A DNA stretch of 64,000 nucleotides from Saccostrea echinata (Eukaryota). The DNA is taken from contig NW_026889803.1 in assembly GCF_033153115.1 (NCBI RefSeq), forward strand, positions 43,338,001 to 43,402,000. The letters run 5' to 3'. This document shows, piece after piece, positions 32,757-55,022 of the stretch. The stretch's first letter is position 1. The number at the start of each line of letters is the position of its first letter. A program made the translations under genes and the position numbers. Below the pieces are notes generated by a model. It ran no database searches. It saw nothing but the letters and a program-made list of their open reading frames with translations, and was not told the origin of the DNA.

Positions 32757-32798
<42 letters not shown>
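31251..32798 (-). mobile_element. Non-autonomous Helentron (HINE) carrying a Cg170-type satellite array
   Basis: On the - strand it begins TTAGCTCACCTGAGCCGAAGGCTCAAGTGAGC, has a (GTC)n microsatellite and tandem core repeats, and ends CTCAGGTGAGCGATGTGGCCCATGGGCCTCTTG. Inserted in a T-run within the LINE RT with no TSD. Confidence 0.9.
31430..32530. repeat. About 7 tandem copies of a 153-167-bp satellite monomer (Cg170/HindIII-like)
   Basis: GATCC.CCATTGTGGC...GGGGTCATGATTTGAACAAA...ACCTGAGGATGCTTCCA recurs at ~31431, 31588, 31741, 31906, 32063, 32229 and 32396. Confidence 0.9.
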
Positions 32799-32801
<3 letters not shown>

Positions 32802-33330
32802 GGTGAAAGATTTTCTCCCTGTCTTACTCGTACATTACAACTAAAAAATTCTGTGGACATGCCATTTATTTTCACCATAGATTTAACACCTTTGTACATA
32901 TTTTGAATATATTGAAAACATTTACCATTTATACCATGAAAATGTAACTTGGTCCAAAGCCCATTCCGCCATACAGTATCAAATGCCTGTTTAAAGTCAA
33001 CAAAGGCGCAAAATTACGATGGCCGACAGCGGCCGCCACTTTTGAATAGAAATATTGTCATTTTGTACAGCGCTTTTGTCAATTTTTGTTGACAAGTTAC
33101 AACTCAACTAGTAATGCAATATGTACATGTACAATTCTTACACTGACAAAGTTCACCTGCGAAAAACATTAAAATTCTTTCGTGGGATATGAAATAAAAC
33201 AGGTGACTTGAAAGAGATAATGTTCTATCAGTTCTTCGATAATATAGCAAAGGAAGTGAATTTCACACTTAATTAGTCTGGAGCTAGATTCTGTTTACGT
33301 CAAAAGTGCACCGCATTGTATGAAGAAATA

Positions 33331-34216: not shown

Positions 34217-37200
34217 CAGAATTTGCCTTAAATGTGTACACATACCTGCATAAATTCGATTCGTACATATGAATAATAATATTTTAAGAATCTCCATGTA
34301 CAATAATGTATGCTTAAACATTTTCTTTAATGATTTATTCGTTTTACTAATGTCATTATGCATTATGTTCAAAGCTCTAACGCGGTGGGGAAGCGTTTGC
34401 TACGGTGTGATTATCCACCAAGGCGAGGATCAACAGGGTACAGTGATGCAAAACTGGAACGTAAAATAAAGGTATTTTTCATTTACATGTATAATGTTCC
34501 CATAAATTATTAAGAATTTTTTTTATGATACATTTACCTAAAATATTGGATTAATATCATACGATATATTTTATTTAAAGTGACAGTGTGACGGACAAAC
34601 GGGAAAATTGACAACAGTAGAATTTTTGCGTGACACATGCAAATTTTGTTCAGTTCTTGAAAATATTAGGTTTCAGAAAATTACAGGTTTCAGAACCTAA
34701 AAAATCTAATTTAATGGAGAAAAATAAGAGTAAAAAAAATCTTGGTATAACCCATCACAAAAATATTGCTTCATGTCTTCCTCTTTATTGTACGCATGCG
34801 CTGAAAAGTTGAAGAATTTACCATGGTTTCAATATTCCATAGATATAAATGTCGGATGACTGAGAATTTTGATACAATCTTCAAAAAAGATGATCATAAC
34901 TTATTCCTTACAGTGTACTTCTGCTTGCCCGAATTCAATGTTGTTTACAAGTTTCACGCTAAAAATAAAGGACGCGTGACCTTGTTGACATTGACGATAA
35001 AAACAAAGCGATAGATACAACATTTGTTTTTCCGGCACTTATATTTTGCAGTTTTTTTTCTTGCTTTACAGTGGAGTTGAGTTGTCAAAACTTCGCTATA
35101 TTCATATTTCACAGAAATCTTTTGTTTTGTGATACAATTTTCTTAAAAGAAAAACATCGTTTTGACTCATTATGCAACTTTAATGGCAATATCCCATACT
35201 TTTTACGATACATGCAGTTTTCATGGATTGTCTCCCATCTATTATCGTAGGAGCGGCCCATCTTTTTGTAGTTGTGTTAGGAATTGAGGCGTTATTTCTT
35301 TTTTCATTGCCTCGATGAAATAATTCTTTATTGATAACAAACATAGAAGTCATGAATAAAGGTTTTTGAAATTCGCTTTATACTTTGTCTTAATGGTTGT
35401 TATTAAGTTTTAATTTGTTTTCTTTTTCATCGAATATTCATTAATTTATGATTTTATAAAAAGTTGTTGCATGAACTGCTCCACAAGATGGGCATGCATA
35501 AGATATAGAAACAAAACGTAGTTAGTTTCCGGATATGAATTACAGTACCTGAAATAACTAATAAATTGTAAAAGTTTTTAAGAAGAAGTGAATTTTGTTT
35601 TGAATACATCTATTGCAGTTGCAAATGACACCCCGATTTTTGGACATTTCACATATATTTTAGAACATCGGCATCATCACATGACAAAGCTCCACGATAT
35701 CAGTACGTGGAGTTTGTATTTCCTTTTTTGTCAGCAATTCAGACAGTATGTCATTATAGATATGTTTTGCATTTGTATTTGAGTCAAATAATTTTATGAT
35801 CATACTATCCTTTTTTTATATCCATGAATTCATTTACTTTGTTTGATCAGACTGAAAATTGAAGTATAAGAAATTATATTTACATTTCCAATGTCTTTGT
35901 CCGAGATAAAATTACGAATTGTAAAAATACTTTATTTCTACATAAATCTACTGGTTCATCGATAGGCGCGGTTAAAAAAAAATCACGTGCGGGGCGGGAC
36001 AAATAGAGACAGAAGCGGGGCTAATAGCACGGGAATTTGCAGAATCAGGAGCATGTAAATATAAGGAATAACTGTCAGATTTTTTGGATTCATGACGATG
36101 ATCAATCGATTGGCTTGCGTGATAATTTTATGCATAAACGCCTTGGGCGCTTTTTGCAAATTATTGCCCAAGCCACTCGATTGATCACATCATGAATCCA
36201 AAAAATAAGACAGTTATTCCTTAAGCACAGAAAAAGTAAAGCAATGGAACAATTTTCAAAAGAAATGTACCATGTATTTTTTAANNNNNNNNNNNNNNNN
36301 NNNNNNNNNNNNNNNNNNNNNNNNNNNNNNNNNNNNNNNNNNNNNNNNNNNNNNNNNNNNNNNNNNNNNNNNNNNNNNNNNNNNNNNNNNNNNNNNNNNN
36401 NNNNNNNNNNNNNNNNNNNNNNNNNNNNNAATATCACATTGATTATATCTACTTGCATTTCAATTTACAGGACATGCTACAATCTTCGCCACCGACAGTT
36501 GGCTATAGACATATGACAGACAAGCTCAGACATCTAAATATACCAGTTCGCAGGTACATTATTTTTTTGTAAAGTCATAATGATTTTATAGCATTTATAT
36601 TTTAGTCAATTAGTCAAGAAGCAAAACTTTACTTCAAAAAGTTTAAACTTGTTTTCTAGCTTCCCTCTTAAACATCAATACAAGAAGAATCATTTAGACT
36701 CGAGTTATGACGTCTTTTCTGACTTTATTGTATGATTGTATTATAGAACTTATAAATAACTATGTTTTAGTCATTTAAAGTTGGCATTGATGTAAAACGG
36801 TGTACAAACGTTCATCATTTAGTGAACCCCCATTTTTTTTTTATTAAGGGGAGGGGCTTGCAGATTGTGGAAATAAATATTTTTCCTCCAAAATGTTGAA
36901 AATAAATTTTCTGTCCTAGACTGGCGATATGTCCTCGGCTAGAGTTTCGGTTTGGCATGAAAATACATGTAAATAATCTGACTCGAAAAAGAATTGCCAC
37001 CGGGCCCTTTCAGAATCAACTAGTCGTCCCCTTAAGTTTTCTATAATGCCTTTAACAGTTGCCACATTATGCATAGTTAAATATTTTTATGCAATCAAGT
37101 CCACTTTAAAATTTTATCTTATTTCAGAGATAAAGTAATGGAAATTATGAGACGAATTGACCCACTCGGTGTTGATTTTCGAAGACGCCGTCGCATCAAA

Positions 37201-40200
37201 CGAAAAATATATTATTCACAGGGTCCAAATTATATATTGCATGTTGATGGGTAAGATGATATGTCAGGTCATGTAAAACTGATTAATATCGAAAAGATTA
37301 AATTCCAAATCTCCTTCCGCGTCGGGGAAAATTTTTCATCCCTTGGAGACTAACATAATCAATGTTGCCCTCAACTCCAGTCAACTTTTGCAAAATGATC
37401 ATCGCCCATTCCATCCCCCAACCCCCACCCCTATATGTTATTTCTCTCAACTAAGGGATTCCTTGACCTTTCATTTTCTGTCATCCCTTCATTCTAATTT
37501 AAATATATTGAGCTCGAATACTGTTTGTTATCTCCACATATTTCATTCAAAGAAAGCTCACAACCATTGTAATGTCACTTTTTCAGTTTATAAATAGAAT
37601 GAGTTTTAAATGAAGAAATGCTCAAGAAATCAAGAATATCTTTTGTTTAAAATCAATTATTTGCACACTTACAGATATGACAAATTAAAACCGTTTGGAT
37701 TTCCTATTCATGGATGCATAGATGGGTAAGTCAAATTTTGATTTAATTAACTTGTTCAATGACTTTTGTCAAGGACCTGTGCACAGCAGGCACTTCATTT
37801 CTCTTCCTGACCTTAAAATATACTTCAGTAATAGATTTCATTATATACCAGTGGGCCAATTTCAAGCTAACTTCCCACCAGAATCCTTTGGTGAAGAGAA
37901 TTCAAGTTTGTTCAAATAAAAGGATAATAAGGACTTAGTTTAAATTTCATGGCACCTTACAAAAATCTTCTCAAGAGTAACTGAACCAGAAAATATGAAA
38001 CTTACATTGAAATTTCCTGACTTAGTGTAGACTCAAGTTTGTTCAAATTGTGACTCACGGGGTAGGATAGGGCCCCCCATGGGCCATCAGATGTTTACAT
38101 AGGAGTATATAGGAAACAAAACATTTAAAATTCTTCTAGTCAAGAACAGGAACGCCATTGTAAGTCATTTTATATGTAAACACCCGCAGGTAGTGAGTAT
38201 AGATCCCAGTTTGTTTAAATCATGCTCCCCTGTGGGTAGCATGGGGCAAGAATGTGCGATGAAAATGTCTACATAGAACTATAGGGGGAAATCACTGAAA
38301 ATAATTTTCTCATAAACAGCAAAGCCATGACTAGTCATATTATATGAAAGCATTTTAAGATAGTGTAGATTTAAATTTGTTCAAATCATGACCCCCAGGA
38401 ATAAGGTGGGGCCACAATGGGCGATCAAATGTTTACATAAAGTATAAAGGAAACACCTTTAAAAGTTTTTCTCAAGAAACAGCGAAGCCCAGGTCAGTCA
38501 TATTTATATAGAATCATCCTCAGGTAGTGTAATATGGGAAAAAATCTGCTGGTGAAAAAATAGCAGGGCCATAGTGGTTCAGGTAAGCATTGTGGCCCAT
38601 TGGCCTCTTGTATGAGAGTTATATGGTTGTTTTTCAAGATGATACGTTATTAAAATGATAGTGAAGGTGGAGGTATACCTTGTGGAAGTGTTCTTTGATA
38701 GCGATGTCTGAAACTCGCCAGTGCTGTAATCATCTTTTCCAATTACAAATACCTAGGTTTTCACGACGAATTATGTGGCTTGAAGTAGGGCCTTCTAACA
38801 ATGATCCAGAGATAGTGGCCTGCAATTTTGTCCAAACTGTAGCGGCTTTGAGAGGTATCAAATAATATTACAAACTTTCTATTCAGTTTCTGTACTTGCA
38901 ATCATGCATATATTCTGTATGAAAATTCATTATTATATAACATGTATAATAGGATGCCCAAGAATACTACAAAGTGACCCGGGAACAGAAAACATAACCA
39001 TGGGTGCTCTTCAGTGTTTGTATCGAAATCCAGAACAAGATCAGTCCACGGCAAGAGACTGTTATCGAGTTACCAGATCAGTTTTCAATCAGGTGCGTGA
39101 TTGGTCAACTATGTTGTACGTCATTGTAAAGCTTTGATCATTTCTTTATGTCCATTGTCAGAAACAAAATTCACACAGTCTATATCACATTAAACCACTC
39201 GTCCATTTCATACCAAAAAAAAAAAAAAAAAAAAGAAAAATTCAACCTGGATACCTATGATGTAAGCACCATGCACACCATATGGAATTTGATGTAGTAC
39301 TACAGTCTGTCGAGATAGAAGACAATCTAGAATTACTTAGACTGTGCATCCTGGTAGAATTTTATCTCCTTCGAGTGACCTGTCTTATGTACATGTGTGT
39401 TTTATAAGAAAGGATTTTGATGGATTTCTCCTGTGGAAATTGTCTGTCTAATATCGTGGGATATACAAAAAAAATAAGGAAAAAAAGAACTAAATCCGAA
39501 GTCTCAATAGAGCAATCCGAAGTAACTGTCAAACAGAAGTAAATCGAATATCCAAGAAATTCACGTACATTATTTTCACAGAGAATTGAGGCATGGTGGA
39601 GCATGATGCGCCGGCATGAAATGGAATGGTGGATATCTTTTTTCAAGGAATTGGAGACTGATGGTTTCTTTCGTAAAGATGTGATAAATGATGTGTAAGA
39701 ATTGGCAAATAATATTCTTTATGCTCATTGACTTAAACATATACGGAATAATAATGTTGAGAAGAGTTTATATAGTAAATGCTCTACATAATTATGTTTC
39801 CAGGTATTCATTGCGATTTTGCTTTATGCCAGTTCTACAAAACGTCCTGGATGCGGTAAAAGAACAATGGAACAATCACCCAATAGCATACAACAGACAC
39901 TCTGCTTGTCCACATGGTCGTCCAAATGTACTTTATATACTGCCAGAGGAAAAGGGTACTACACTTAATGCTTGAAGTTCATGCATAAAATAACCTCTTC
40001 TAAAAGAGGGCTTTTCCCTGCCTTTAATGTGAAAGAAATGCACATAAATTAGGTAAAAAAAATGCTATCAAGTCACTTCCCTCGACATTCACAATGAAAA
40101 TTTAAAAAAAAATGCAGTTGAAATTCTAAAACACAGTGAAAGCGGATAGGGTATGTGCTTGTTAATTAAATATCAAACCGTCCCAATTCTTTACCTTTTC

Positions 40201-40446
40201 AAAACTAGGTGCAATTTAAATACATGTATGTTGATATTTACAGGATTCTCTGATTGCATTCACCCCGTTTCTGAAGAAGATATTAACTTCAGCAAACTGC
40301 AGTGCAAGGTTCCAACTAGAAGTGGATCTTTGGAATTTGACAATTATTCTAATGCTTTGTTTGGACGAAAAGGGTGGAGTGATGCAACTTCCTGGCAAGA
40401 AGCACTTGAGCAATATTTTGAACTGGTTGCAAATAATATGAATTAA
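33331..40446 (+). CDS. Spliced integrase-core DDE transposase (IS3/IS481-like)
   Basis: Exons 33331-33343, 33508-33595, [one exon not found, possibly in gap 36285-36429], 36471-36553, 37128-37250, 37675-37725, 38757-38854, 38953-39092, 39582-39694, 39804-39955, 40244-40446. Motifs VGYRHM, RKIYYSQGPNYILHVDGYDKLKPFGFPIHGCIDGFSRRIMWL, SDPGTEN, NQRIEAWW, WNNHPI. The D-D-E triad is intact. Confidence 0.88.
37790..38611 (+). mobile_element. Decayed HINE with Cg170-type repeats in a transposase intron
   Basis: Satellite-like monomers in the opposite orientation to 31251-32798; 3' end TCAGGTAAGCATTGTGGCCCATTGGCCTCTTG. Confidence 0.7.
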
Positions 40447-41980: not shown

Positions 41981-44827
41981 AAAAATTCCAATGAAAAGAG
42001 GAATATAAACCTTAGCGTAGGGTCAATTTTTGTTGCTTGGTCGACAAAAGGGTAAACACGCGATATTTTAATTAAAACCAGTCTGACATGCATATGTAGA
42101 GTATGTGTAAAACACGAAGAGAGAAACGAGAAATGAAAATTGAATATAATTAAGGAATGATAAAAACCAATTACCTCAAAATGTCAACTGAGGGGACAGC
42201 TTTTGCCTTGATTTTATTTTGTTGGAGAAGAGGCTGAGTGAAATTAAAACATCGACTTAAAACACCTGACAGATTTAATTAGATATCTACAGCAGAAAAG
42301 TACATGTTTAACTGGTAAGAGACGGATCACCTCAAATTATTATCTGATTGTTACATAATCAAAGAAACAAAACGTTAAATAAAATATTTATACGTCTGTT
42401 TATCAATAACATATATATAGTACGGAAAGCTATTATAACATTGACATTAAATTTCTCTTATGATATTACCAGATTTCTATATCACAAGGATTATCTTGGT
42501 GGCAGTAAAATCTGGTAATCTGCATCAATTGATTCTTTTTTGACAAAGGTATAATTAGAGTTTTAAAATAGTTTGGACTATTATATAGTATGCCAGCGGA
42601 AATACGTTCAATAAGTTTATCACTCAAGATATCAGTTGATGACTTTATTATTTTAAGAAAAAGGTGGGTAAGCATTTCTTTCGTGTGATAGTGTTGTATG
42701 AATTAAATCTGTCAAGATTTTACGTTTTTTCAGTGTGGGATACTTGTGCGGGTCGCTGATAAATCTGACCTAAGTAAGATGTTTTCGATTCGTAGTTTAA
42801 CCCAAAATGGGTGTTAACAAATGCCAAATCGTACATTTCAAAGTTAACTTCCGAAGGAAGCAATAGTCTATTTATACATGTTGTCGCGGTTGGAAACCGC
42901 CCCTCTTCCAGCTGGAACACAATATTGTTGGCTGTATAGCATATCCCAACACAGGTATTTCTCTTGCTCCTGTTACGAAAGCTAGAATGTTTTCCAGACT
43001 GACCTTGTCACCCCGTCTTCCAGCTGAAAAAAATTATACCTTTAAATTAACATTTTTACTTTAATATGATAAACAAAAAGTACATAATTTTTAGGTGCAT
43101 TGTTTATTCGGAATACCTAACAACAGCGGATAAATTCGAACTCTTCTTTTTTTCCGTCAGAGAATCACTGAACACTGCAGTACGTACCGTAGACATCTCT
43201 GACGTATTTGAGGAATTGTCTATACATGTATATTGTTTCTTCAACCCTCCTCCTATTAGTCCCTTCCTCGCTGAACTTGACTTCGAATGTTTTGATAAAC
43301 TTTTGTACGGTGAGTACAATATTTTCAATTCTTCGAAAAAGGAACTTCAGGGTTCTTTTGCCCCTCATCAACTGTAAAACATTGTTTTATGTATATACTA
43401 ATTTTTTTTCTAAGGACATGTACCAGCATCATTTAAAAAGGCATAATCTGTATATTCAAAGAACGACATGTAATCAAACTACCAGGAATTAAATCAGTAT
43501 TTAAAAAGCATTCAATATAATTACATGTAGTTGAATAAACATCTTTAAATAAATGTAAGCTTTGAATTGTAAATTTTTTGGACTATCATTGAATCATAAC
43601 GCACACGTATTTCTAACGCGCTATTGAGCGGAATTTAAATTCCACATCGTTCACAGGTTTCAGTGATATGCATTTTTTATGGACTCATAACAAACCCCAC
43701 AAGGATTCAACGGGAAGAAGCCAGTTGAAATGCTTTTTGACGAGAAAGACGTTTCTTACTAATACAACTATGTTTTTAAAAATATTCCTATTTCAATATG
43801 GAATTGGAATATAAATTATATCCTTGTCCGCATCCAAACAGTGATTTTTTTTTTTTTTTTTGGCAAGGTAATCTGTTAGCGAAGCGACATGCTTGTGATT
43901 CAATCTGGAGTGGAGTCACATAAATAGATATGTCAGCAACCTACGTGGGCTAGCTCTGTTATAAAAAAAAACACATGGTACGCAGAAGAAAAAATTTTAA
44001 TTGATTTGAAATAGCTCCTCCCCGTAATATGACCCAGACTACTTTTTTTTATTACTGAATTTTCTCCAAACTTAACCTAGCGCCCTATCAGTGTACCATA
44101 AATCTTGGGTTGCTGAAACAATAACGAGAATGACTTGATAACTTTGTGGGGATTTTTTATGCAAGTGTGTGCATTGTTTGTTCACAACTAACACAGATTA
44201 AGAATACATTATTTTGAGAGAACATATAGTTATGGTGCTTCACTTCTATTTAAGCTTTTATAAAATGACCAAGAAATTAGCTATAGAAGTGTTTTGCTCA
44301 TTTTTAATGAAGTAAGCAATCATTAATATCTAATTGTAAACACTTAAACTTATTTAATTTTTGCACTTATTTTCTTGAACCCTTTTAATAATGCCAAACA
44401 AACCCACAAAATCTGATCGGTAACGTGTTATTTTACAGCATTATTGTGCTGTGCGATAAATTTGACAAATGATCGACGTTTATAGCCATGGGAATTACCT
44501 AAATGTTATAAAGTTCAGCAGTTGTAAACAGCAGAATCTTAATAAATAGATGGACTTGTTTATCTTAAATATTTGGTCAATTTATTAGCATAATCTCTTT
44601 GATGTTTCATGTCCAGATTCATTGTTGATATTTAGACCTTTTAAGCTGAGGGTTTAAGAGAGCTAATGTTAACTTGTCATCGTCTTTTCTAGAATCACTG
44701 GCCAATTCATCTGACTGGTCATACTTCACATTAATGTAAAAAAAAAAAAAAAAAAAAAAAAACATAGCTCTAAGCATATTAGATATCTCCCCTATTGTGA
44801 CCGTCTACTCGATCCATCTAGTTATGT

Positions 44828-45320: not shown

Positions 45321-47754
45321 GATACGGGAATAGCTGAGTGTATATGCAGATGTTTTCACACTTGTATTAATGTCGCAACAAAATCAGGTCTATAGTATAA
45401 TGCTTTACAACACATTTGGAATTGGGTTCACTTCCTTACCATGCACATCTAAATTCCGTATTTTATTTCGCTTTTTAATCTTGTAATTTCTTCTTCTTTT
45501 TTTCATTTAACAATTTTGTTCTTTATTTTGTAAATTTAGTTATTTTATTTATATTTTTTATTTTGCACTATTGGGCTTTCGGAATTAAACGACTAAAAGT
45601 GCGTTGTGAATAATTCACGGTAAAACGAGTCGTAAATAATTTAATATTATTAAAAGCGGGAAATTTCATAATTTAGAGACATTAGTAACCAGCAGGCAAA
45701 CACTATAAAATCAAAGATGTACCTGAATCAGCCCTGTCTTTTCCAGTCCCCGGACGAACTGGTCTTTTTGCTCTGATTCCGGAGATTGGAAGAGCTGATC
45801 CAGAAAGTCAGCTAATGACCCTCCTTGAATAGCACTCAGACCTGGAATTCAGATAAATAAAGAAGGAAAATAGCAATTTGCACATCTATAAGGTAAATAT
45901 ATATGTAACGTCCGAGCAATTATCAGATAAATTAATTAGTCCATTTCTTATTGCAGGTAGCAATAATATGTAAAATATAAGTAAACGCTCAATGCGTAAT
46001 CCAGGTATTTAATCGCTCCCGGCGATTTACTCCTGCTTTGGAAATCAAAAGTTAGTATCGGGTTAAATTTTATTTACACATAATCATAGTTAAGAATCAT
46101 CCAAAATCAACACAATAAAACACTGTATAATTAATCCTGGAACAATTTTTGAGCGAAGTATCTCCCAACAGAACTATATGAAAAAACTGTCCTCGTATCA
46201 AATAAGTACCCGTATATATACTAAATGACCATCACTCCTAAGGAGTGATGGGGTATAAACAAATGACCGTCACTCCTAATGAGTGACCGGGAGTTATATA
46301 AATACTGCAGAATATTAAATAAACAAATAAAATAATAAATTTAGAAAAAGGCTGACTTAAAAATACGTGACATATAATAATGCTGTATGACCTCCTTTTT
46401 GCTTAAAAATAGATATTGAATCCTTGTTCGATCATTTTTGCAAGATTTTTTGATATATCTCGGTATTTATTTTCTGCCATTATTGTTATTTATGCCAGGG
46501 TAAAAATAGTTAACTTTTACATTAATCCGTTGAGTTATTCTAAATTTTAATTTTGACTAACCTATTGTGATTCCAGCGTAATAATAGTAATAACGCGCCA
46601 GTGCCTCCTCGTCTAAGTGCAAGGTGACTATACCATTTGAAACTGACACAAGTTTCTCTTTGATGGCAGTGAGCATCAATTCGAAAAATTCCCTCCTAGG
46701 TCCACCATAATCTTCGGCGTTCTCCCCATGGAAGTTTACTTCCAAGGGATATCTGAGGTTTTCAAGATGCTGCAACTCCTCAATGGCATCCTGGAATATG
46801 TCACCGCGACTAACAAAAATAGAGCAGGTCTCTCCTTCGATGACCACCGACTCGTGGGATATATCCAGTGGCCGTCCCCTCATGTAGATGGACTGATATT
46901 CTTTAAGAATTTCCACTGGATCAGAGGACTGTGTTCTGGAAAAAAAAAATATATCAACTGTATGTGAGTGCATGGAAGTTCGGAATGAAGCATTCATTGA
47001 AACATGAATTAATACATGTAACTTTTAATTCAAACATACAAAACATGTGATATTTTAGCAATTTTTTTTTAAATGCATACCCATATCTTGTTTACTTTTA
47101 ATTGTTTTCTTAAAGTATTGAAAATAATAATGTCAGTTAGAACACTTACTTTAAAACTTTTTCCGCCAAATATGACGGAATTTCTGATGGCATTGCATAT
47201 GATCCCGGAACAGGCTCCTCCATGTCTATGGATTCTGTCACTCTACAATTAACAAATACATACATATTCATACATATATGAATGTCATGGTAATCGGTGC
47301 ATATTTTAAACATTTATATTCACTTTTCCGAAACTATTTTTATCTATTCCTTAAGTAATAAGTTCTGATACAAAAATAATAAAAGACTATTAATTATCCG
47401 ATTTATAAGTTTGACTAACCTAAAGAGCCGAAGTGTGTACGAATATATCATTCCCATTGTTATAGATTGCATACAATGAAATTGATCTTTACTCGATAGA
47501 TAACTTTTTGAAAATAACCTGTTTTTCTCCCTAAAACGTGTCAGAAATTAATTTAAGACAATGAACAATATGAGTTGTCAACAGTTCATTAATCGCAGTG
47601 AATGTCTGTTATGGCCACGGCCCTCTCTTTTTGGCATATTTACGAATAGTCATGATTGAAATTGCCAACTTATGTTAAATGATTTGTTAAAAAATATCCA
47701 TGCTCTGGCCATAGCTATATGCATACTTAACCCTCATATAGTGGCGTTGAATAA

Positions 47755-48262: not shown

Positions 48263-49242
48263 GTTGAATCATTCACAGTATGGAGACAAAATGTCTTTGA
48301 TTAAATTTATTTGAAGGGTTCTAACCATACAGCATACCAAAGAGGTTTCTTCGGTTAAATAATGATTATGAACCCTATCTGAATACTGACCCAGTTTCAG
48401 TAGTCCCTTTTTATTTTCATCTTCTTTAGGAGTGGAGGTCAAAGGCAATATTTCTGGTAAATCATCGGAGGACGAGGAATCGCTGATGATTTCAATATCC
48501 TCAGAATGTTGATTTGCCTCATAGTCAGCTTAAAAGATTCATCGTTGGAAACATCATTACCATTGTATTTAATATGCAGGTTATAGTTGAGGTTTGTGGA
48601 GCTCTTGAAAGTGTGCCAATATTTTAGTCTTTATACGTAAACCATTTTCCCCCTCTCTCTCTCACTTTCAAATACCTTTCGCTCAAAATAATTTGGAATT
48701 GTGCTATGAGTGTAAATTGGTGAATACAGTATTCCCTTACCTTTCGTACACAAAAATAATCTAAGCCTATCGAATCGTCTTTGAGGGTCAATACTGTCCC
48801 TGTAACCTTTAATTGAGAAGGGTTCGTCGGATCCAGGAATTTTGTTTACTATAGAACCATCCGGATATAATAAGTGGAATAGCTCATTTGATTTGTATTT
48901 TTGTCTGAACACTCTGTTTTGATCAGAAAATTTCTCAAAGGCTGCATTCTTTATATCATCTGACACGTTTCCTTCCTTGGAGAAAGGTCCAACTATCACC
49001 ATTCCCCCGCATCCAGACAGACTAAGCGCAGACATCTTACAAAACACCCCATTTTTGAAATATCCATTTCCAACAGAAATCTGAAAAGGAATCAAATGTA
49101 ACAGTTCAAATTTTTGGTCACTCCAAATAAATTAATACCTACTCGTAAACATCAATATTCCAAGATATGTCTGCACAGAACTACTTGTAACACGACTACA
49201 AGTTCGAAATGCAATTACAAAATGTACACGGATGGTTATTTC

Positions 49243-50631
49243 TACGATGGCCGACAGCGGCCGCCACCTTTGATTAAGAATATTGTAATTTTGTACAGCG
49301 TTTTTGTCAATTTTTGTTGACAAATTACAACTAAACTGGTAATGTTATATGTACATACAAAGGTTTACACTGACAATATACACCAGAGGAAATCATTAAA
49401 CTTCTTTCAAGTGATATGAAATGTAGATACATAAAACAGGCGAGGTAATTCTAGATTAGTATTGGCTTCTAGCTAGATATGCTTCCTCGACAGATTGTAG
49501 TAATTAATTTAAAAAATCCCACGTTGGTGTACGTACTAGTCACATCATAGATAACCATTTTTTTCTGGGTCTATAAGAAATTTGATTTTTCTATATAGTG
49601 GGACGTGACGATGTCTTTGGTGTATGAATTATTTTTTTATTAATGTGCACAAAATAATTCATCATAGTACATGTATAGCTATTTTAATTGGTCGTGACAC
49701 ATAGAAAAATAATTAGTCGACCAGGTGGAATACTTTTGAGGCTGCGTTGGCCTTTAAAAGTGTTTCAAACACTTGATTATTAATTTTATATATTTAAGGA
49801 GCAAACACAGACTCCCACATTTAAGGTTGACATTTTATTCTTGTTAAAAAAACGGGTATATTTCCGTATCTAAAGTTTTGTTTTTGATACAATCCAAAAA
49901 CTTTAGACTGGATGCTCTCATGTATAGCTGCTAAATCCTGTTGCTCTACCTCTGCATAATTGGTAGAATCGAGCTGTCTCATAAACTACATGTATGCGAT
50001 ACAGTACCAACCAGACCCAACCTGACACCAAAGCAGTCCCAGAAAGCAGTCCCCGGGACTGCTTTGGGACCGCTCTGGGACTGCTGTGGGACTGCTCTGG
50101 GACCGCTGTGGGACTGCTCTTGGACTGCTGTGGGACTGCTCTGGGACCGCTCTGGGACTGCTCTGGGACCGCTGTGGGACTGCTAAAGCAGTCCCAGAAA
50201 GCAGTCCCCGGGACTGCTCTGGGACTGCTTTGTGTCAGGTTGGGTCTGGCTGGTACTGTATATTGATGTGTATCCATAACAAAACTGTATTTATCCACAT
50301 AATTGTGATAATCCTTAGATTTTTTTTAAGATGCAGCAAGAAAGAAAATGACAAATGACAATTTTACATCTAACATCTAGGGTACGATATCTCAGACTAA
50401 TTAAGAGTGAAAAATCATTACAAAGCACCTTATCTCTTCCAAGTCATCTGTTTTATGTATGTTAATTTCATATCACAAGAAAGAATTTTAATGTTTTTCG
50501 CTGGAGGAAATTGTCAGTGTAAAAACTGTACATGTACATTTAACATACCAGTTTAGTTGTAATTTGTCAACGAAAATTGACAAAAATGCTGTACAAAATG
50601 ACGGTTTTCTTAATCAGAAAGTGGCGGCCGC
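49243..50631 (+). mobile_element. Non-autonomous derivative of the host IS3EU-like element, nested inside it
   Basis: Left end TACGATGGCCGACAGCGGCCGCCAC plus diverged TIR; right TIR ends GTGGCGGCCGC and lacks the last 14 bp; TSD TATTTC at 49237-49242 and 50632-50637. Confidence 0.85.
50002..50258. mobile_element. Tc1/pogo-type MITE filled with an 11-bp minisatellite (GGGACYGCTST)
   Basis: TA|CAGTACCAACCAGACCCAACCTGACAC ... GTGTCAGGTTGGGTCTGGCTGGTACTG|TA. Confidence 0.85.
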
Positions 50632-52374
50632 TATTTCTCTCTCCCCCCCCCCCCCTTAATTTTGTTTCAAATACGAAATAAACTTGCCATGACTTTATCT
50701 TGCTTTTTGCTCTTCTCATTTACGTGAACATGTCTGCTTGGCTGTCTAGATGCTAGTTGCATTCTGTACGACTGAAACATTCCAAATCTCGAAGAATTGT
50801 CTGAACAGAGAAAAATACAAACTTGATTTAACGACTCGATGGGGACTAAATAACTTTACAATGAGGATCTTTGACATTTTTGGATAGTAGAGGAATTGCT
50901 TTTATTAATTAACACTTTAGAAATAATTTGTCCCAAAGTAATTTACATCTTACAACAAACATTAATAGAAATAATAATAGAATCCAAGTGGATGTAGGCT
51001 ATGTCTGTCCACTTCTCCAAGGAGAATATAATGACACAGTTTATTCTACCGAATAAAGTAGATTTTAAAAAAAATGATGTTTCTTGTGTCCAGGTTCTTG
51101 TTTGTAAGTCATGATTTTATTTTGCTGTATGTACTTGTATCTGTCTAATACTGTACGTATTTTACCTATCCGTAGTTGCCGAAATCCCCAAAAATTAAAA
51201 ATGAATGGAGTTCTTATAACCTGATATATTTAATTTATGGATTAGTATTTACATCATCGGAATATTTAATCCATTATTTCCTATGAAAATCATGGCTATT
51301 TATCAATCAGTAAACGCCGTTTTCAGGCCACCTGTATAAAATCTTAGATAGTGTGCTTTAACTGCTTTTCAATCAATGAAACATACAATGATGTACCTAC
51401 ATGCAATATTGAACTTACTTTATAGGAGTATTTATAGAGACATAGATATAATCAATAAAATGTTTTTCTTTGATGGCTTATGCGGGTTGTGTATTTTTTC
51501 TGTTACAGCTACAATCGTGGATTCCAGTTCCAACAATCAGAGAAATTTTTTTTATTGTTTTTAAAAGGCGACTTTTTATTGTAAAAAAGTTATTGAATAA
51601 ATATTATTTAAACTAGAAATTAAGGATTTTTGCTTTTGATAAAGATTAAAATGCATGCCTATCATCCAATCATACAGAGTATTACAAGTGAAATAGAAAA
51701 ACGAGTAACGACCTCCGTTAAGGAAATCACATTGAATAATGGGATTGATAAAATAAAGCTCCTGGTTCATATCAAAAGTGTACACACTTGACAAAGATAC
51801 TGGTCCACTGTTAACAACCAAATAAACTCGTCCTGACACTTGCCATCCGCCATTTGGTTCCAAGAAGACATTCTCTCGACAAAGTATATGGTGTTGTTTA
51901 TCATCGTGATCTTCTTTAAACCTGACAGAAATTGCATTTGGAAATGCGCTTCCTGTTCGAAATGAAATGTCTAGCTTTTAAGTACGTTGTGCACTTTTAG
52001 AAAAATTCATTTCTTTATTACATTGAAAGAGTTAAAATATATATAAACATACGTAAGTCCTCTAGAGTTAGCTTATTATCTTCCGGGATTGGAAAATAAA
52101 TTAATGTTTCCTCTTCATCATCCAAGCAGCGAATTGGAATATTAGACCTGATAATTATACATAAGCATAAAGAATTAATTAAAATAAAGTTATGGGGTTC
52201 CAACTTGTTATCTGATTGGTGTTTAAAGGTAAACATTTTTAAAAAAAAATTCTTAATCTTTTAAATTTAATAAGGCTGACTGTAATATTAAGCAAAAACT
52301 TTTGTTCCAGAATGATGTTTCTATAGCAATAAATATCTTGGACTTCATCTAACTGTTTTCATGCAGCAAGATCA

Positions 52375-53327: not shown

Positions 53328-54687
53328 AGACCTCTTTAAAGAAAAAGCTTTGAAAGCATATTTTAAAATTGAAAAATATAGTTTTATTAATTCGAACTCA
53401 GGAACTGTGGTTACGTAAACATTTATAAACATTCGTCTGGAATGTAACCTGTTAAAATTTTGGCCATAGAAGATCACTATGTAGACTAAAAATTTTCTTT
53501 CAAAAGTTACAAATTGAAGTGGGTAGGTTCACTAATATCCCTAGATGATCGCTTACATGTATGTATCAGATATAATTCTACCACTATAAATATTGAAACC
53601 CATATCTTTATAACATGTGAAAAAAAAATCACCAAAGAAAAGAAATATTTCGAGTAATTAAAATCAAATTTATTTACAAATTCATTCAGATAGTGAACAA
53701 AATGTATTTGGTTGTTCAGTAGTGAAGACAAGGAAAGTCAATTTATTAAATATAACATGTTATAGTAATCATGTACTTGTACAGATTATTGTACTTTTTT
53801 AAAAAGAATAATTTTTGTCACAAGATCAATTAGCAATGCTATGTACTATTTGTTATACTTTCCATTGGCATGTCTTTTCCTGATTATTGTAACCATTTCA
53901 CATTTATTTATTTTGGGCTCTTACTTACAAATAAATATTCTGTTCTGTTCTATTATCTATTTCGGACATACTTATAACAGGTTTACAGGTTTATTATGCA
54001 GGTATTTTTTTTTCTTCATGCCGTGTTTAGAATATTACATTGGAATGCTAACGAGTACTATATAGATATTTGTAACTATTTATAAAATATCTCTCCTCTT
54101 TCTCTCTATCTGAAGTCAAAGAAAGACAACTTGTCCGTTACGACTAGGAGGAGTGCAAGTAATTTGCTATACTGTTTCTGTGTGTGAGTGAATCTCATTT
54201 TCAATTACTTTATTATATAAAATGATCCTAAATCGGAAAGGATGGTCAGAATTCTGCACAAGGTCACATGTTCCATACATTATTTAAATTTAAACCCTCC
54301 AAAAAATTCTCAAAGTATGTTCGAAGTTAAATTCTAATACTTACATTTTAAGAAAACAATGCCTCTTCTTGGTGTGAAACGCTACGAAATGACGACAATA
54401 TGCCCAGCGGGAAATAGGATCTCGGACCAATTAAGCGTGAACTTCAATAAAATGCACGTTCTTATATAAAATTATCTTTATCAAGTCACCTGTTTAATGT
54501 ATCTTAATTTCATATCCCACGAAAGAATTTTAATGTTTTTCGCAGGTGAACTTTGTCAGTGTAAGAATTGTACATGTACACATTGCATTACTAGTTGAGT
54601 TGTAACTTGTCAACTAAAATTGACAAAAGCGCTGTACAAAATGACAATATTCATAAACAAAAGTGGCGGCCGCTGTCGGCCATCGTA

Positions 54688-54926
54688 CAAAATAGTTTCT
54701 TTTTTCTTTGCATCAAGATATTTGCATCAAGATATTTGATAAAAATTGTAAGGTAAGGATATGATCGAGTGTAGAATAATTTTTCCGAAAACCCGCTTGG
54801 TTTTCTTTAAGTAGATTAATTTCATTTGCATAAGCTTCCAATCTAGTATTTAGTATACAAGTAAATACTTTTCCTAAGCAACTTAGCAATGTTATGGGGT
54901 GATAATTATCAGGTTTAGTCGGGTCT

Positions 54927-55022
<96 letters not shown>

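Follow-up and report, generated by a model that had tools for sequence, protein, structure and literature searches.

The N-terminal domain of TDP-43 (Pfam TDP-43_N, PF18694) has a DIX-like or ubiquitin-like fold and joins TDP-43 molecules into chains, which control the splicing activity of the protein and protect it from the kind of aggregation found in ALS and FTD. To our knowledge, this domain has been studied almost only within TDP-43. The polar interface between successive units is formed by residues E14, E17, E21, and Q34 on the tail side and by N45, S48, R52, R55, and N76 on the head side, the strands β2 and β4 form an intermolecular β-bridge, and polymerization is abolished by the substitutions E17A/E21A or R52A/R55A (PMC5491494). 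In the same work, the TDP-43 N-terminal domain has been likened to DIX, a domain that serves to concentrate an activity attached to it (PMC5491494). Two scallop proteins in the databases already carry the PF18694 tag, and our literature search found no paper on an architecture combining TDP-43_N with HECT or on its transposon context; full-text searches returned no paper combining IS3EU with HECT and no paper with PF18694, and broader searches on transposons and HECT returned only unrelated papers among those listed. Here we describe a TDP-43_N-type module that leads a HECT ubiquitin ligase gene of a DNA transposon in the oyster Saccostrea echinata.

The analyzed window, a stretch of 64,000 nucleotides from contig NW_026889803.1 (positions 43,338,001 to 43,402,000, numbered below from its first base), contains an element of 21.7 kb bounded by terminal inverted repeats (TIRs) at 33015-33198 and 54504-54687. 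The two arms measure 184 nt, are 96% complementary, and are flanked by the 6-bp target-site duplication CAAAAT at 33009-33014 and 54688-54693, respectively. Homology to the copies on C12, C5, C33, and C36 stops exactly at position 54687, and the copies on C12 and C33 also start at about 33014-33015; the C12 copy is 100% identical to the window element and has different flanks. In addition, empty sites in which both flanks are contiguous were identified at other loci, e.g., C56:18468402-18468856. The possibility that the arms are unrelated repeats instead of real TIRs is contradicted by the copies ending at the termini and by the empty sites. The element is a recently mobile TIR DNA transposon, and the ligase that carries the module is its second gene. 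The transposase exons (37081-40443, plus strand) are convergent with the HECT gene, and their open reading frame pieces contain motifs like those of a DDE integrase-type transposase; three of these exons, searched singly, gave no match in Pfam. In three diverged lineages of the element, homologous transposase exons likewise lie downstream of the HECT gene and are encoded on the strand opposite to it.

The module is encoded by two exons on the minus strand. Exon 1 (52053-52147), which covers strands β1 and β2 and the start of helix α1 of the TDP-43_N-like domain, is flanked by an acceptor AG at 52149-52148 and a donor GT at 52052-52051, and its in-frame part (52054-52146) is translated into 31 residues. 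Exon 2 (51788-51952) covers strands β3 to β6 and includes the family motif QHHILCR; it is flanked by an acceptor AG at 51954-51953 and a donor GT at 51787-51786 and contributes in frame 47 residues up to VVN, followed by seven further residues. The 100-nt GT..AG intron between them (51953-52052, minus strand) interrupts an Arg codon (C/GA) made up of C at 52053 and GA at 51952-51951. This intron position is common to all paralogs in which exon 1 was located, whereas the TDP-43 domain of the host gene has no intron there. The first base of exon 1 is presumed to be the last base of the start codon. A pyrimidine-rich tract followed by AG/G precedes exon 1 in the window, in the close copies L003 and L005, and in paralogs that are 39-68% identical over exon 1, and both the AG/G acceptor and the GT donor of this exon are kept in paralogs with identity as low as 39%. 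Since this acceptor is accompanied by in-frame stops upstream of exon 1 in L005 and in three divergent paralogs, the start codon is probably split as AT/G, with its AT coming from a separate 5' exon. The peptide proposed in an earlier sequence-only reading of this DNA is thus encoded as written, by two exons with canonical splice sites and with the same Arg at the codon split by the intron, except for its initial '(M)', which is absent from both exons.

Downstream of the module, on the same strand, a short linker exon (exon 3, 50724-50800) was located by tblastn of residues 73-89 of the protein P0005 and contains the scallop motif RFG(L/V)FESYR; with its cag/ acceptor and /gtaaat donor, it connects exon 2 (phase 1) to exon 4 (phase 0) without loss of frame. 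Exon 4 (48741-49080, minus strand) encodes a conserved middle domain with 52-54% identity to P0003, a spliced relative from Pecten maximus, and to P0005. No Pfam family matches this middle domain; in the model of the scallop relative, the corresponding residues 118-246 resemble RA, RBD, SUMO, and ISG15 domains (Z about 7), which suggests a ubiquitin-like or RA-like β-grasp fold. The first HECT exon (46560-46935, minus strand; acceptor ccag/ at 46936), located by tblastn of P0003 and P0005, encodes the beginning of the N-lobe, including the motif GGPRREFF, and the equivalent stretch of P0003 has weak matches to the HECT domains of Rsp5 and HUWE1 (E 0.25-0.44). The last HECT exon (42760-43023, minus strand) encodes the C-lobe, in which the catalytic Cys codon was placed at 42878-42876 by a five-copy alignment.

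In the window copy, 2 bp inserted at 42925-42924, 15 codons before the catalytic Cys, shift the reading frame and break the ligase; none of the four other aligned copies has this insertion. The same copy lacks 26 bp including the stop codon (junction 42794/42793), and it has no HECT C-lobe with the catalytic Cys in an open frame; its two HECT open reading frame pieces are in different frames in the window and in the same frame in the C33 copy and in L035. Consequently, only other copies of the element could make an active enzyme. In the family as a whole, the C-lobe with its catalytic Cys is retained in an open frame, and the HECT profile PF00632 is matched by the relatives P0054 (34 bits) and P0053 (30.1 bits). 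The exons are in the same order as the corresponding parts of P0003, P0005, and P0054, a full-length protein from Argopecten that contains both the module and the PF00632 domain, and splice phases agree across exons 1-5. By this comparison, the encoded protein appears to begin with the module and to end with a compact HECT domain of the G2E3-like type; between them lie, in this order, a short linker, the ubiquitin-like middle domain, and a stretch rich in acidic residues and serine.

The evidence that the module belongs to the TDP-43_N family was obtained exon by exon for the window and from database proteins for the whole domain. Exon 2 alone matches PF18694 with E 9e-4 over profile positions 30-73 of 74; its score of 19.5 bits is under the curated cut-off of 27.1 bits, and exon 1 of the window alone has no Pfam match. 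The cut-off is passed by P0003 (32.6 bits), whose identity to the window is 54% in exon 2 and 53% in exon 1, by the exon-2-only relatives P0014 (30.4 bits), P0032 (28.6 bits), and P0018 (28.5 bits), and by exon 2 alone of the C61 paralog (28.5 bits). Profile-profile comparison by hhalign with the host TDP-43 domains gave 92.5% probability over 61 columns for the module and 92.7% for exon 2 alone, and it placed exon 1 alone in the right register with a weak score (E 0.0012, probability 19.5%). The host TDP-43 genes themselves are encoded at other loci (L013 to L016) and score 114-118 bits. A phmmer search of P0003 against PDB sequences returned only weak TDP-43 matches (E 0.4-2.1), so that profile and fold methods were needed, and a homologue search of proteins with P0003 residues 1-90 returned only P0003 itself.

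The fold of the domain was assessed on a template-free AlphaFold (AF2) model of P0003, built from an alignment that did not contain any TDP-43 sequence, in which residues 1-80 have a pLDDT of 77-86. In this model, the scallop relative folds as in the solved structures of the TDP-43 N-terminal domain, with one helix packed on a six-stranded sheet. Its best Foldseek matches are the TDP-43 structures 6T4B and 5MDI (E 2.7e-5, target TM 0.79-0.84, probability 1.00), and VIA-align superimposed residues 1-82 on 6T4B, 5MDI, and 6B1G with Z 11.2-11.6 and an rmsd of 2.0-2.2 Å over 78-79 residues; the best match to any protein other than TDP-43 has Z 8.1 and lies on another domain. The module and the TDP-43 N-terminal domain are true homologues, and the sequence-only reading, which had recognized this resemblance by eye and assigned the module to the HECT gene of a transposon, is borne out on the first point by the TDP-43_N profile, the profile-profile comparison, and the structures. 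On the second point, collinear exons, consistent splice phases, TIRs, and conserved gene order indicate that the module exons are part of the HECT gene and that this gene lies in a genuine transposon; the link to the HECT exons is drawn from comparative and reading-frame evidence. Neither of the two outcomes that the sequence-only reading named as refuting, i.e., no profile or structural match to TDP43_N or exons that do not splice to the HECT exons, was observed.

PF18694, searched against all six reading frames of the 923-Mb genome, gave 14 matches, which comprise five host TDP-43 loci, one single-copy gene on C29, and eight members of the transposon family. The genome contains 12 copies of exon 2 without stops, with identities of 40-100%. 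The conserved motifs of the family are (I/V)(Y/F)FP(I/V)P and QHHILCR. Between lineages, pS is 0.59-0.89 and pN 0.18-0.38, and no copy contains a stop; synonymous sites are saturated, and amino-acid change is low. Element lineages that are 40-74% identical share their gene order, and the exon order is the same in four diverged paralog lineages (L035, L036, L038, and L039) and in the close C33 copy (L040). As judged from these sequence comparisons, the gene arrangement is held by purifying selection across deeply diverged lineages of the element. The arrangement is present in several bivalve families.

The C29 gene (G000:C29:14754200-14764199, L041) is a non-transposon, single-copy gene in which a TDP-43_N domain (34.8 bits, above the cut-off) is located at the N-terminus, upstream of G2E3-like HECT exons on the same strand, so that TDP-43_N and a G2E3-like HECT domain are joined in one predicted gene. 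Unlike the transposon module, its TDP-43_N domain is encoded by one exon with its own Met. A UIM-like motif is found between the TDP-43_N and HECT parts, there is no recognizable copy of the middle domain of the transposon gene, and the start of the HECT region is only about 31% identical to that of the transposon gene. The existence of a non-transposon gene of like design implies that the fusion of TDP-43_N with HECT may have arisen for reasons other than an attack on TDP-43.

What the module does for the ligase was considered in light of the TDP-43 interface. At the nine polar interface positions the window has T, Y, P, and A on the tail side and E, D, H, L, and V on the head side, i.e., none of the nine residues is kept, whereas the host TDP-43 keeps seven of the nine. 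I16 and P19, which form the hydrophobic contact of the TDP-43 interface, do not vary in the module. The β1-β2 loop is still acidic (DDEEE in the window), and the conserved motifs of the family map to β2 and β4. We propose that the module is a tethered protein-protein assembly domain, through which the ligase would self-associate, most likely via the β2 and β4 edge strands that TDP-43 uses. The interface chemistry would be re-coded, with Tyr/Phe, Pro, His, and Leu in place of the Glu-Arg salt bridges of TDP-43 and with these replacement residues placed within the motifs (I/V)(Y/F)FP(I/V)P and QHHILCR. Such self-assembly could raise the local concentration of the ligase or its avidity for whatever it ubiquitinates, and the re-coded interface would keep the resulting chains from mixing with those of host TDP-43. 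Tethering and self-assembly of the ligase via a re-coded TDP-43-type interface, in a transposon gene under selection, is in our view the best explanation, and we give it an even chance of being correct. The module may not polymerize at all, because none of the nine polar residues is kept and the substitutions E17A/E21A or R52A/R55A are sufficient to abolish the polymerization of TDP-43. Likewise, the conservation of β2 and β4 could serve folding alone, and a β-grasp domain beside HECT could equally work as a ubiquitin mimic.

The strongest competing explanation is that the module and the neighboring β-grasp domain mimic ubiquitin and, by contacting the HECT domain or ubiquitin receptors either in cis or in trans, tune the activity or localization of the ligase without polymerizing. 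The TDP-43_N fold is itself ubiquitin-like, the middle domain has the above-mentioned likeness to RA, RBD, SUMO, and ISG15, the tandem UBL domains of USP7 align with the N-terminal half in Foldseek, the related C29 gene carries a UIM-like motif, and the polymerization contacts of TDP-43 are lost in the module. However, TDP-43_N is by far the closer match of the module (Z 11.6), well ahead of every ubiquitin-like protein in the VIA-align list, and a ubiquitin-binding element was not found in the transposon gene itself, so that we consider this explanation possible but doubtful. A role in targeting, in which the module would bind RNA, DNA, or a host protein other than TDP-43 and thereby pick the targets of the ligase, appears unlikely: RNA binding by the TDP-43 N-terminal domain is reported in a 2026 preprint (10.64898/2026.10.01.755875) and the family-specific His-His-x-x-Cys motif could form a ligand or metal site, but this motif is not retained in the two most divergent paralogs.

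The sequence-only reading had suggested two functions for the domain, namely polymerization of the ligase or co-assembly with host TDP-43 so that TDP-43 is ubiquitinated, which would counteract silencing. Its placing of a TDP-43_N-type module in the HECT gene of the transposon holds, whereas canonical co-assembly with TDP-43 is at odds with the interface, in which no polar residue is kept. In the second of these scenarios, the module would dock on the N-terminal domains of host TDP-43 by co-polymerizing with them or capping their chains, HECT would ubiquitinate TDP-43, and the element would be derepressed. The true homology of the two domains speaks in favor of such a trap, host TDP-43 has kept its basic head (R52, R55), which the acidic tail of the module could still contact, and TDP-43 is described as regulating retrotransposable elements in other animals (PMC12758826). 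However, all nine polar interface residues are replaced in the module, including the arginines and glutamates needed for TDP-43 polymerization, the published link of TDP-43 is to retrotransposons whereas the present element is a DNA transposon, and the single-copy C29 gene of the same design points to a more ordinary origin of the fusion. We thus consider the trap very unlikely. A complex prediction that paired P0003 residues 1-82 from scallop with the oyster TDP-43 N-terminal domain, i.e., a cross-species pair, scored 0.28 against a mark of 0.34, a value that counts neither for nor against the complex. A narrower form of the trap, in which the acidic tail of the module docks on the head of host TDP-43, caps its chains since the module lacks the arginines that would accept another TDP-43 unit, and marks TDP-43 for ubiquitination as a counter-defense of the transposon directed at an RNA-binding repressor, is highly improbable. 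Finally, that the exons are a chance resemblance or a dead relic and not a functional domain has a negligible probability: window exon 2 alone is under the Pfam cut-off, exon 1 alone has no Pfam match, and the HECT frame of the window copy is broken, but both readings are contradicted by the relatives that pass the PF18694 cut-off, the hhalign probability of 92.5%, the fold match with Z 11.6, and the evidence of selection, with 12 stop-free paralogs, saturated synonymous and low non-synonymous change, and conserved splice sites.

The reconstructed gene represents a second selected use of the TDP-43_N fold, as the leading domain of bivalve HECT ubiquitin ligases, some of which are carried and copied by recently mobile DNA transposons. 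The module is a natural TDP-43_N variant with a fully re-coded interface and can be useful for asking what polymerization requires. It also provides a testable handle on why a transposon carries an E3 ligase, via the assembly partners and substrates of this enzyme.

The closest known system is the TDP-43 N-terminal domain itself (PF18694; PDB 5MDI, 6T4B, and 6B1G), with which the module shares fold, length, and strand order, the core residues F35, P36, P64, G67, W68, Y73, I16, I18, and P19 (human numbering), and the placement at the extreme N-terminus of the protein, at an identity of about 23-26%. The two domains differ in their context: the module is transposon-encoded, is split by an intron that the host TDP-43 domain lacks, and precedes a ubiquitin-like domain and the HECT ligase, whereas in TDP-43 the domain is followed by two RRMs and a glycine-rich tail; the gene of the module does not have this architecture of TARDBP orthologues. 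The DIX domain of Dishevelled and Axin, PB1, and SAM are head-to-tail polymerizing domains; polymerization of the module is a prediction. With respect to the catalytic part, the nearest named relatives of the HECT domain are distant fish proteins annotated as G2E3-like ('G2/M phase-specific E3 ubiquitin-protein ligase-like'; E 2e-11 to 2e-6). The transposon ligase has its catalytic Cys motif at the C-terminus and carries TDP-43_N where the fish proteins carry PF07177. Its HECT region is short; in P0054, it spans about 225 residues, counted from the GGPRREF motif to the C-terminal end. Among mobile elements, the fungal transposons with TET/JBP dioxygenases (PMC12730594) likewise carry an accessory enzyme gene beside the transposase, and such a second gene could affect how the host controls the element; in the oyster transposon this accessory gene encodes a ubiquitin ligase, whereas in the fungal transposons it encodes a TET/JBP dioxygenase.

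The module is encoded by two minus-strand exons, exon 1 (52147-52053) and exon 2 (51952-51788), both with a canonical AG acceptor and GT donor, and the 100-nt intron between them interrupts an Arg codon (C|GA). The peptide proposed in the sequence-only reading is an exact match to the exon-by-exon translations, apart from its initial Met, which is absent from both exons. The first base of exon 1 is a G that directly follows a pyrimidine tract and AG in the window, in two close copies and in paralogs down to 39% identity; in-frame stops lie upstream of it in the close copy L005 and in three divergent paralogs. From these features we infer that the start codon is probably split AT|G, with its first part contributed by a 5′ exon, which was looked for and not located.

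The order of the following minus-strand exons, namely the short exon 3 (50800-50724), exon 4 encoding the middle domain (49080-48741), and the first HECT exon (46935-46560), is collinear after exons 1 and 2 with the scallop relatives P0003 and P0005, and splice sites and phases agree for exons 1 to 5. In Argopecten, the 715-aa full-length protein P0054 comprises the module, then the middle domain, then a HECT domain with the catalytic Cys motif at its end. The same one-strand exon order is found in four paralog lineages, whose modules are 40-74% identical, and in a close copy on contig C33; in three of those lineages, convergent transposase exons are located just past the HECT gene. The module exons are thus predicted to belong to the HECT gene, as originally proposed, on the basis of collinearity, splice phases, paralog exon order, and P0054 architecture. 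Comparisons between lineages show synonymous differences at or near saturation (pS 0.59-0.89) against a pN of 0.18-0.38, and none of 12 exon 2 copies contains a stop codon.

The middle domain of the transposon ligase has no Pfam family, carries the conserved motifs GCGG and RFDRLRL(Y/F)LC, and has about 21 matches in the genome; in the scallop-relative model it appears to resemble RA, RBD or ubiquitin-like beta-grasp domains (Z about 7). In another family member (L037, G000:C5:5069600-5079599), the first HECT exon lies about 560 bp after module exon 2 with no middle domain between them; this copy either arose by deletion or represents a shorter architecture.

Four independent lines of evidence (profile, specificity, profile-profile, and fold) identify the module as a TDP-43 N-terminal domain. 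Exon 2 by itself matches the Pfam family TDP-43_N (E 9e-4, profile positions 30-73/74). A search of 1.8 billion representative proteins with profile A1, built from nine exon 2 paralogs, returned 50 matches, including spliced scallop models in RefSeq. Such relatives, approximately 53-54% identical to the window, supply the profile and fold evidence for the whole domain: the Pecten maximus protein P0003 (LOC117332638; 54% identity over exon 2, 53% over exon 1) scores 32.6 bits against PF18694 over profile positions 9-71, with a curated cut-off of 27.1. When all 923 Mb of the genome were scanned in six frames with PF18694, 14 matches emerged. Four of them are full-length host TDP-43 domains scoring 114-118 bits (three distinct paralogs, one sequence occurring twice); the others are one truncated TDP-43 copy, one single-copy gene on contig C29, and eight members of the transposon module family. 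Comparison of the family alignment with the host TDP-43 domains by hhalign gave 92.5% probability (E 4.9e-7, 61 columns); exon 2 alone reached 92.7%, and exon 1 alone matched weakly (19.5%, E 0.0012) in the correct register.

The host TDP-43 loci (L013 to L017) are on C30, C54 (twice), C42, and C37. Their three distinct full-length N-terminal domains share 70-73% identity; the one present at both C30 and C54 perhaps reflects duplicated haplotypes, and the truncated C37 copy begins at profile position 19.

The predicted fold agrees with this assignment. In an AlphaFold2 model of P0003, obtained without templates and from an input alignment without any TDP-43 sequence, residues 1-80 (pLDDT 77-86) adopt the order beta-beta-alpha-beta-beta-beta-beta. 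Foldseek ranks two crystal structures of the TDP-43 N-terminal domain, 6T4B and 5MDI, highest in the PDB (E 2.7e-5, probability 1.00, target TM 0.79-0.84). VIA-align superimposes the model on the TDP-43 domain over 78-79 residues, almost the whole chain, with Z 11.2-11.6 and rmsd 2.0-2.2 Å, whereas the top non-TDP-43 protein (Z 8.1) matches another domain of the model. In this model, a low-confidence linker (residues 83-121) tethers the module to the ubiquitin-like and HECT domains that follow.

The element carrying this gene spans 33015-54687, with 184-nt inverted termini (96% complementary) and a 6-bp target duplication, CAAAAT, at both ends. Similarity to the C12, C5, C33, and C36 copies stops exactly at 54687, and the C12 and C33 copies start at about 33014-33015. 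Both flanks (32797-33014 and 54688-54945) are parts of a different, interspersed repeat into which the element inserted. At many other loci these flanks adjoin each other, marking empty sites; intact copies of the interspersed repeat, with joined halves, are present at more than 10 loci (88-96% identity). Sampled parts of the C12 copy show 100% identity, yet its flanks differ, indicating recent transposition. Intron 3 of the HECT gene holds a piece of about 1.4 kb (49239-50619) bordered by inverted copies of the element's terminal sequence; this piece resembles a nested non-autonomous derivative, and its termini recur at dozens of loci (83-91% identity).

The module exons are intact in the window copy. 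Within the last HECT exon, the stretch 42793-42925 (minus strand) was compared with the copies L047 (C12), L046 (C33), and L043 and L045 (both C5). A 2-bp insertion at 42925-42924, absent from these four, shifts the frame 15 codons ahead of the catalytic Cys codon (42878-42876), and 26 bp including the stop codon are missing from both the window and C12 copies; therefore, the window's gene cannot make an active ligase. Since these two copies, otherwise 99-100% identical, share the deletion and differ in insertion site, the element moved after the deletion arose.

The single-copy C29 gene (L041, G000:C29:14754200-14764199, plus strand) carries a TDP-43_N domain within one exon that supplies its own Met; at 34.8 bits, the domain exceeds the cut-off. 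A UIM-like motif and then HECT exons of G2E3-like type lie downstream on the same strand. This non-repeated locus apparently represents another design that combines TDP-43_N with HECT. The transposon's gene possibly derives from it: a host ligase already bearing TDP-43_N may have been taken up by the element.

The head-to-tail interface of TDP-43 is a beta-bridge joining strands beta2 and beta4, with salt bridges E17-R52 and E21-R55, further contacts at E14, Q34, N45, S48, and N76, and a small hydrophobic patch of I16 and P19 against M51, R52, and R55; either E17A/E21A or R52A/R55A abolishes polymerisation (PMC5491494). Because human and oyster TDP-43 domains align without gaps, the nine polar residues could be mapped onto the window through the hhalign registers. 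The window has T, Y, P, A, E, D, H, L, and V at these positions; the module retains none of the nine polar residues, whereas host TDP-43 retains seven. The module does have I16 and P19 as invariant residues, and the family motifs (I/V)(Y/F)FP(I/V)P and QHHILCR fall exactly on beta2 and beta4. We tentatively favor a self-association module, although with slightly less than even confidence: it would self-associate the ligase via a re-coded interface, and its chains would not mix with TDP-43. Alternatively, the module may be a ubiquitin-mimic regulatory domain, or may have a targeting role. The earlier suggestion that it traps host TDP-43 for ubiquitination is weakened by the loss of the interface and by the single-copy C29 gene, which apparently also joins TDP-43_N to HECT.

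An automatic PF18694 tag is already attached to two scallop proteins, and named relatives of the module occur in Pecten, Argopecten, Mytilus, and Tegillarca. A weaker relative comes from the hemichordate Saccoglossus kowalevskii: its short protein P0034 (LOC102810396, 118 aa) fits the profile of the exon 2 family (E 7.6e-5), and to judge from this match TDP-43_N-like domains outside TDP-43 may extend beyond molluscs. In the paper collection searched, no paper pairs IS3EU with HECT and none mentions PF18694, and broader searches listed nothing on transposon-borne HECT. In the transposon ligase, both the fold and the enzyme are known, but we rate their combination and genomic setting as previously undescribed.
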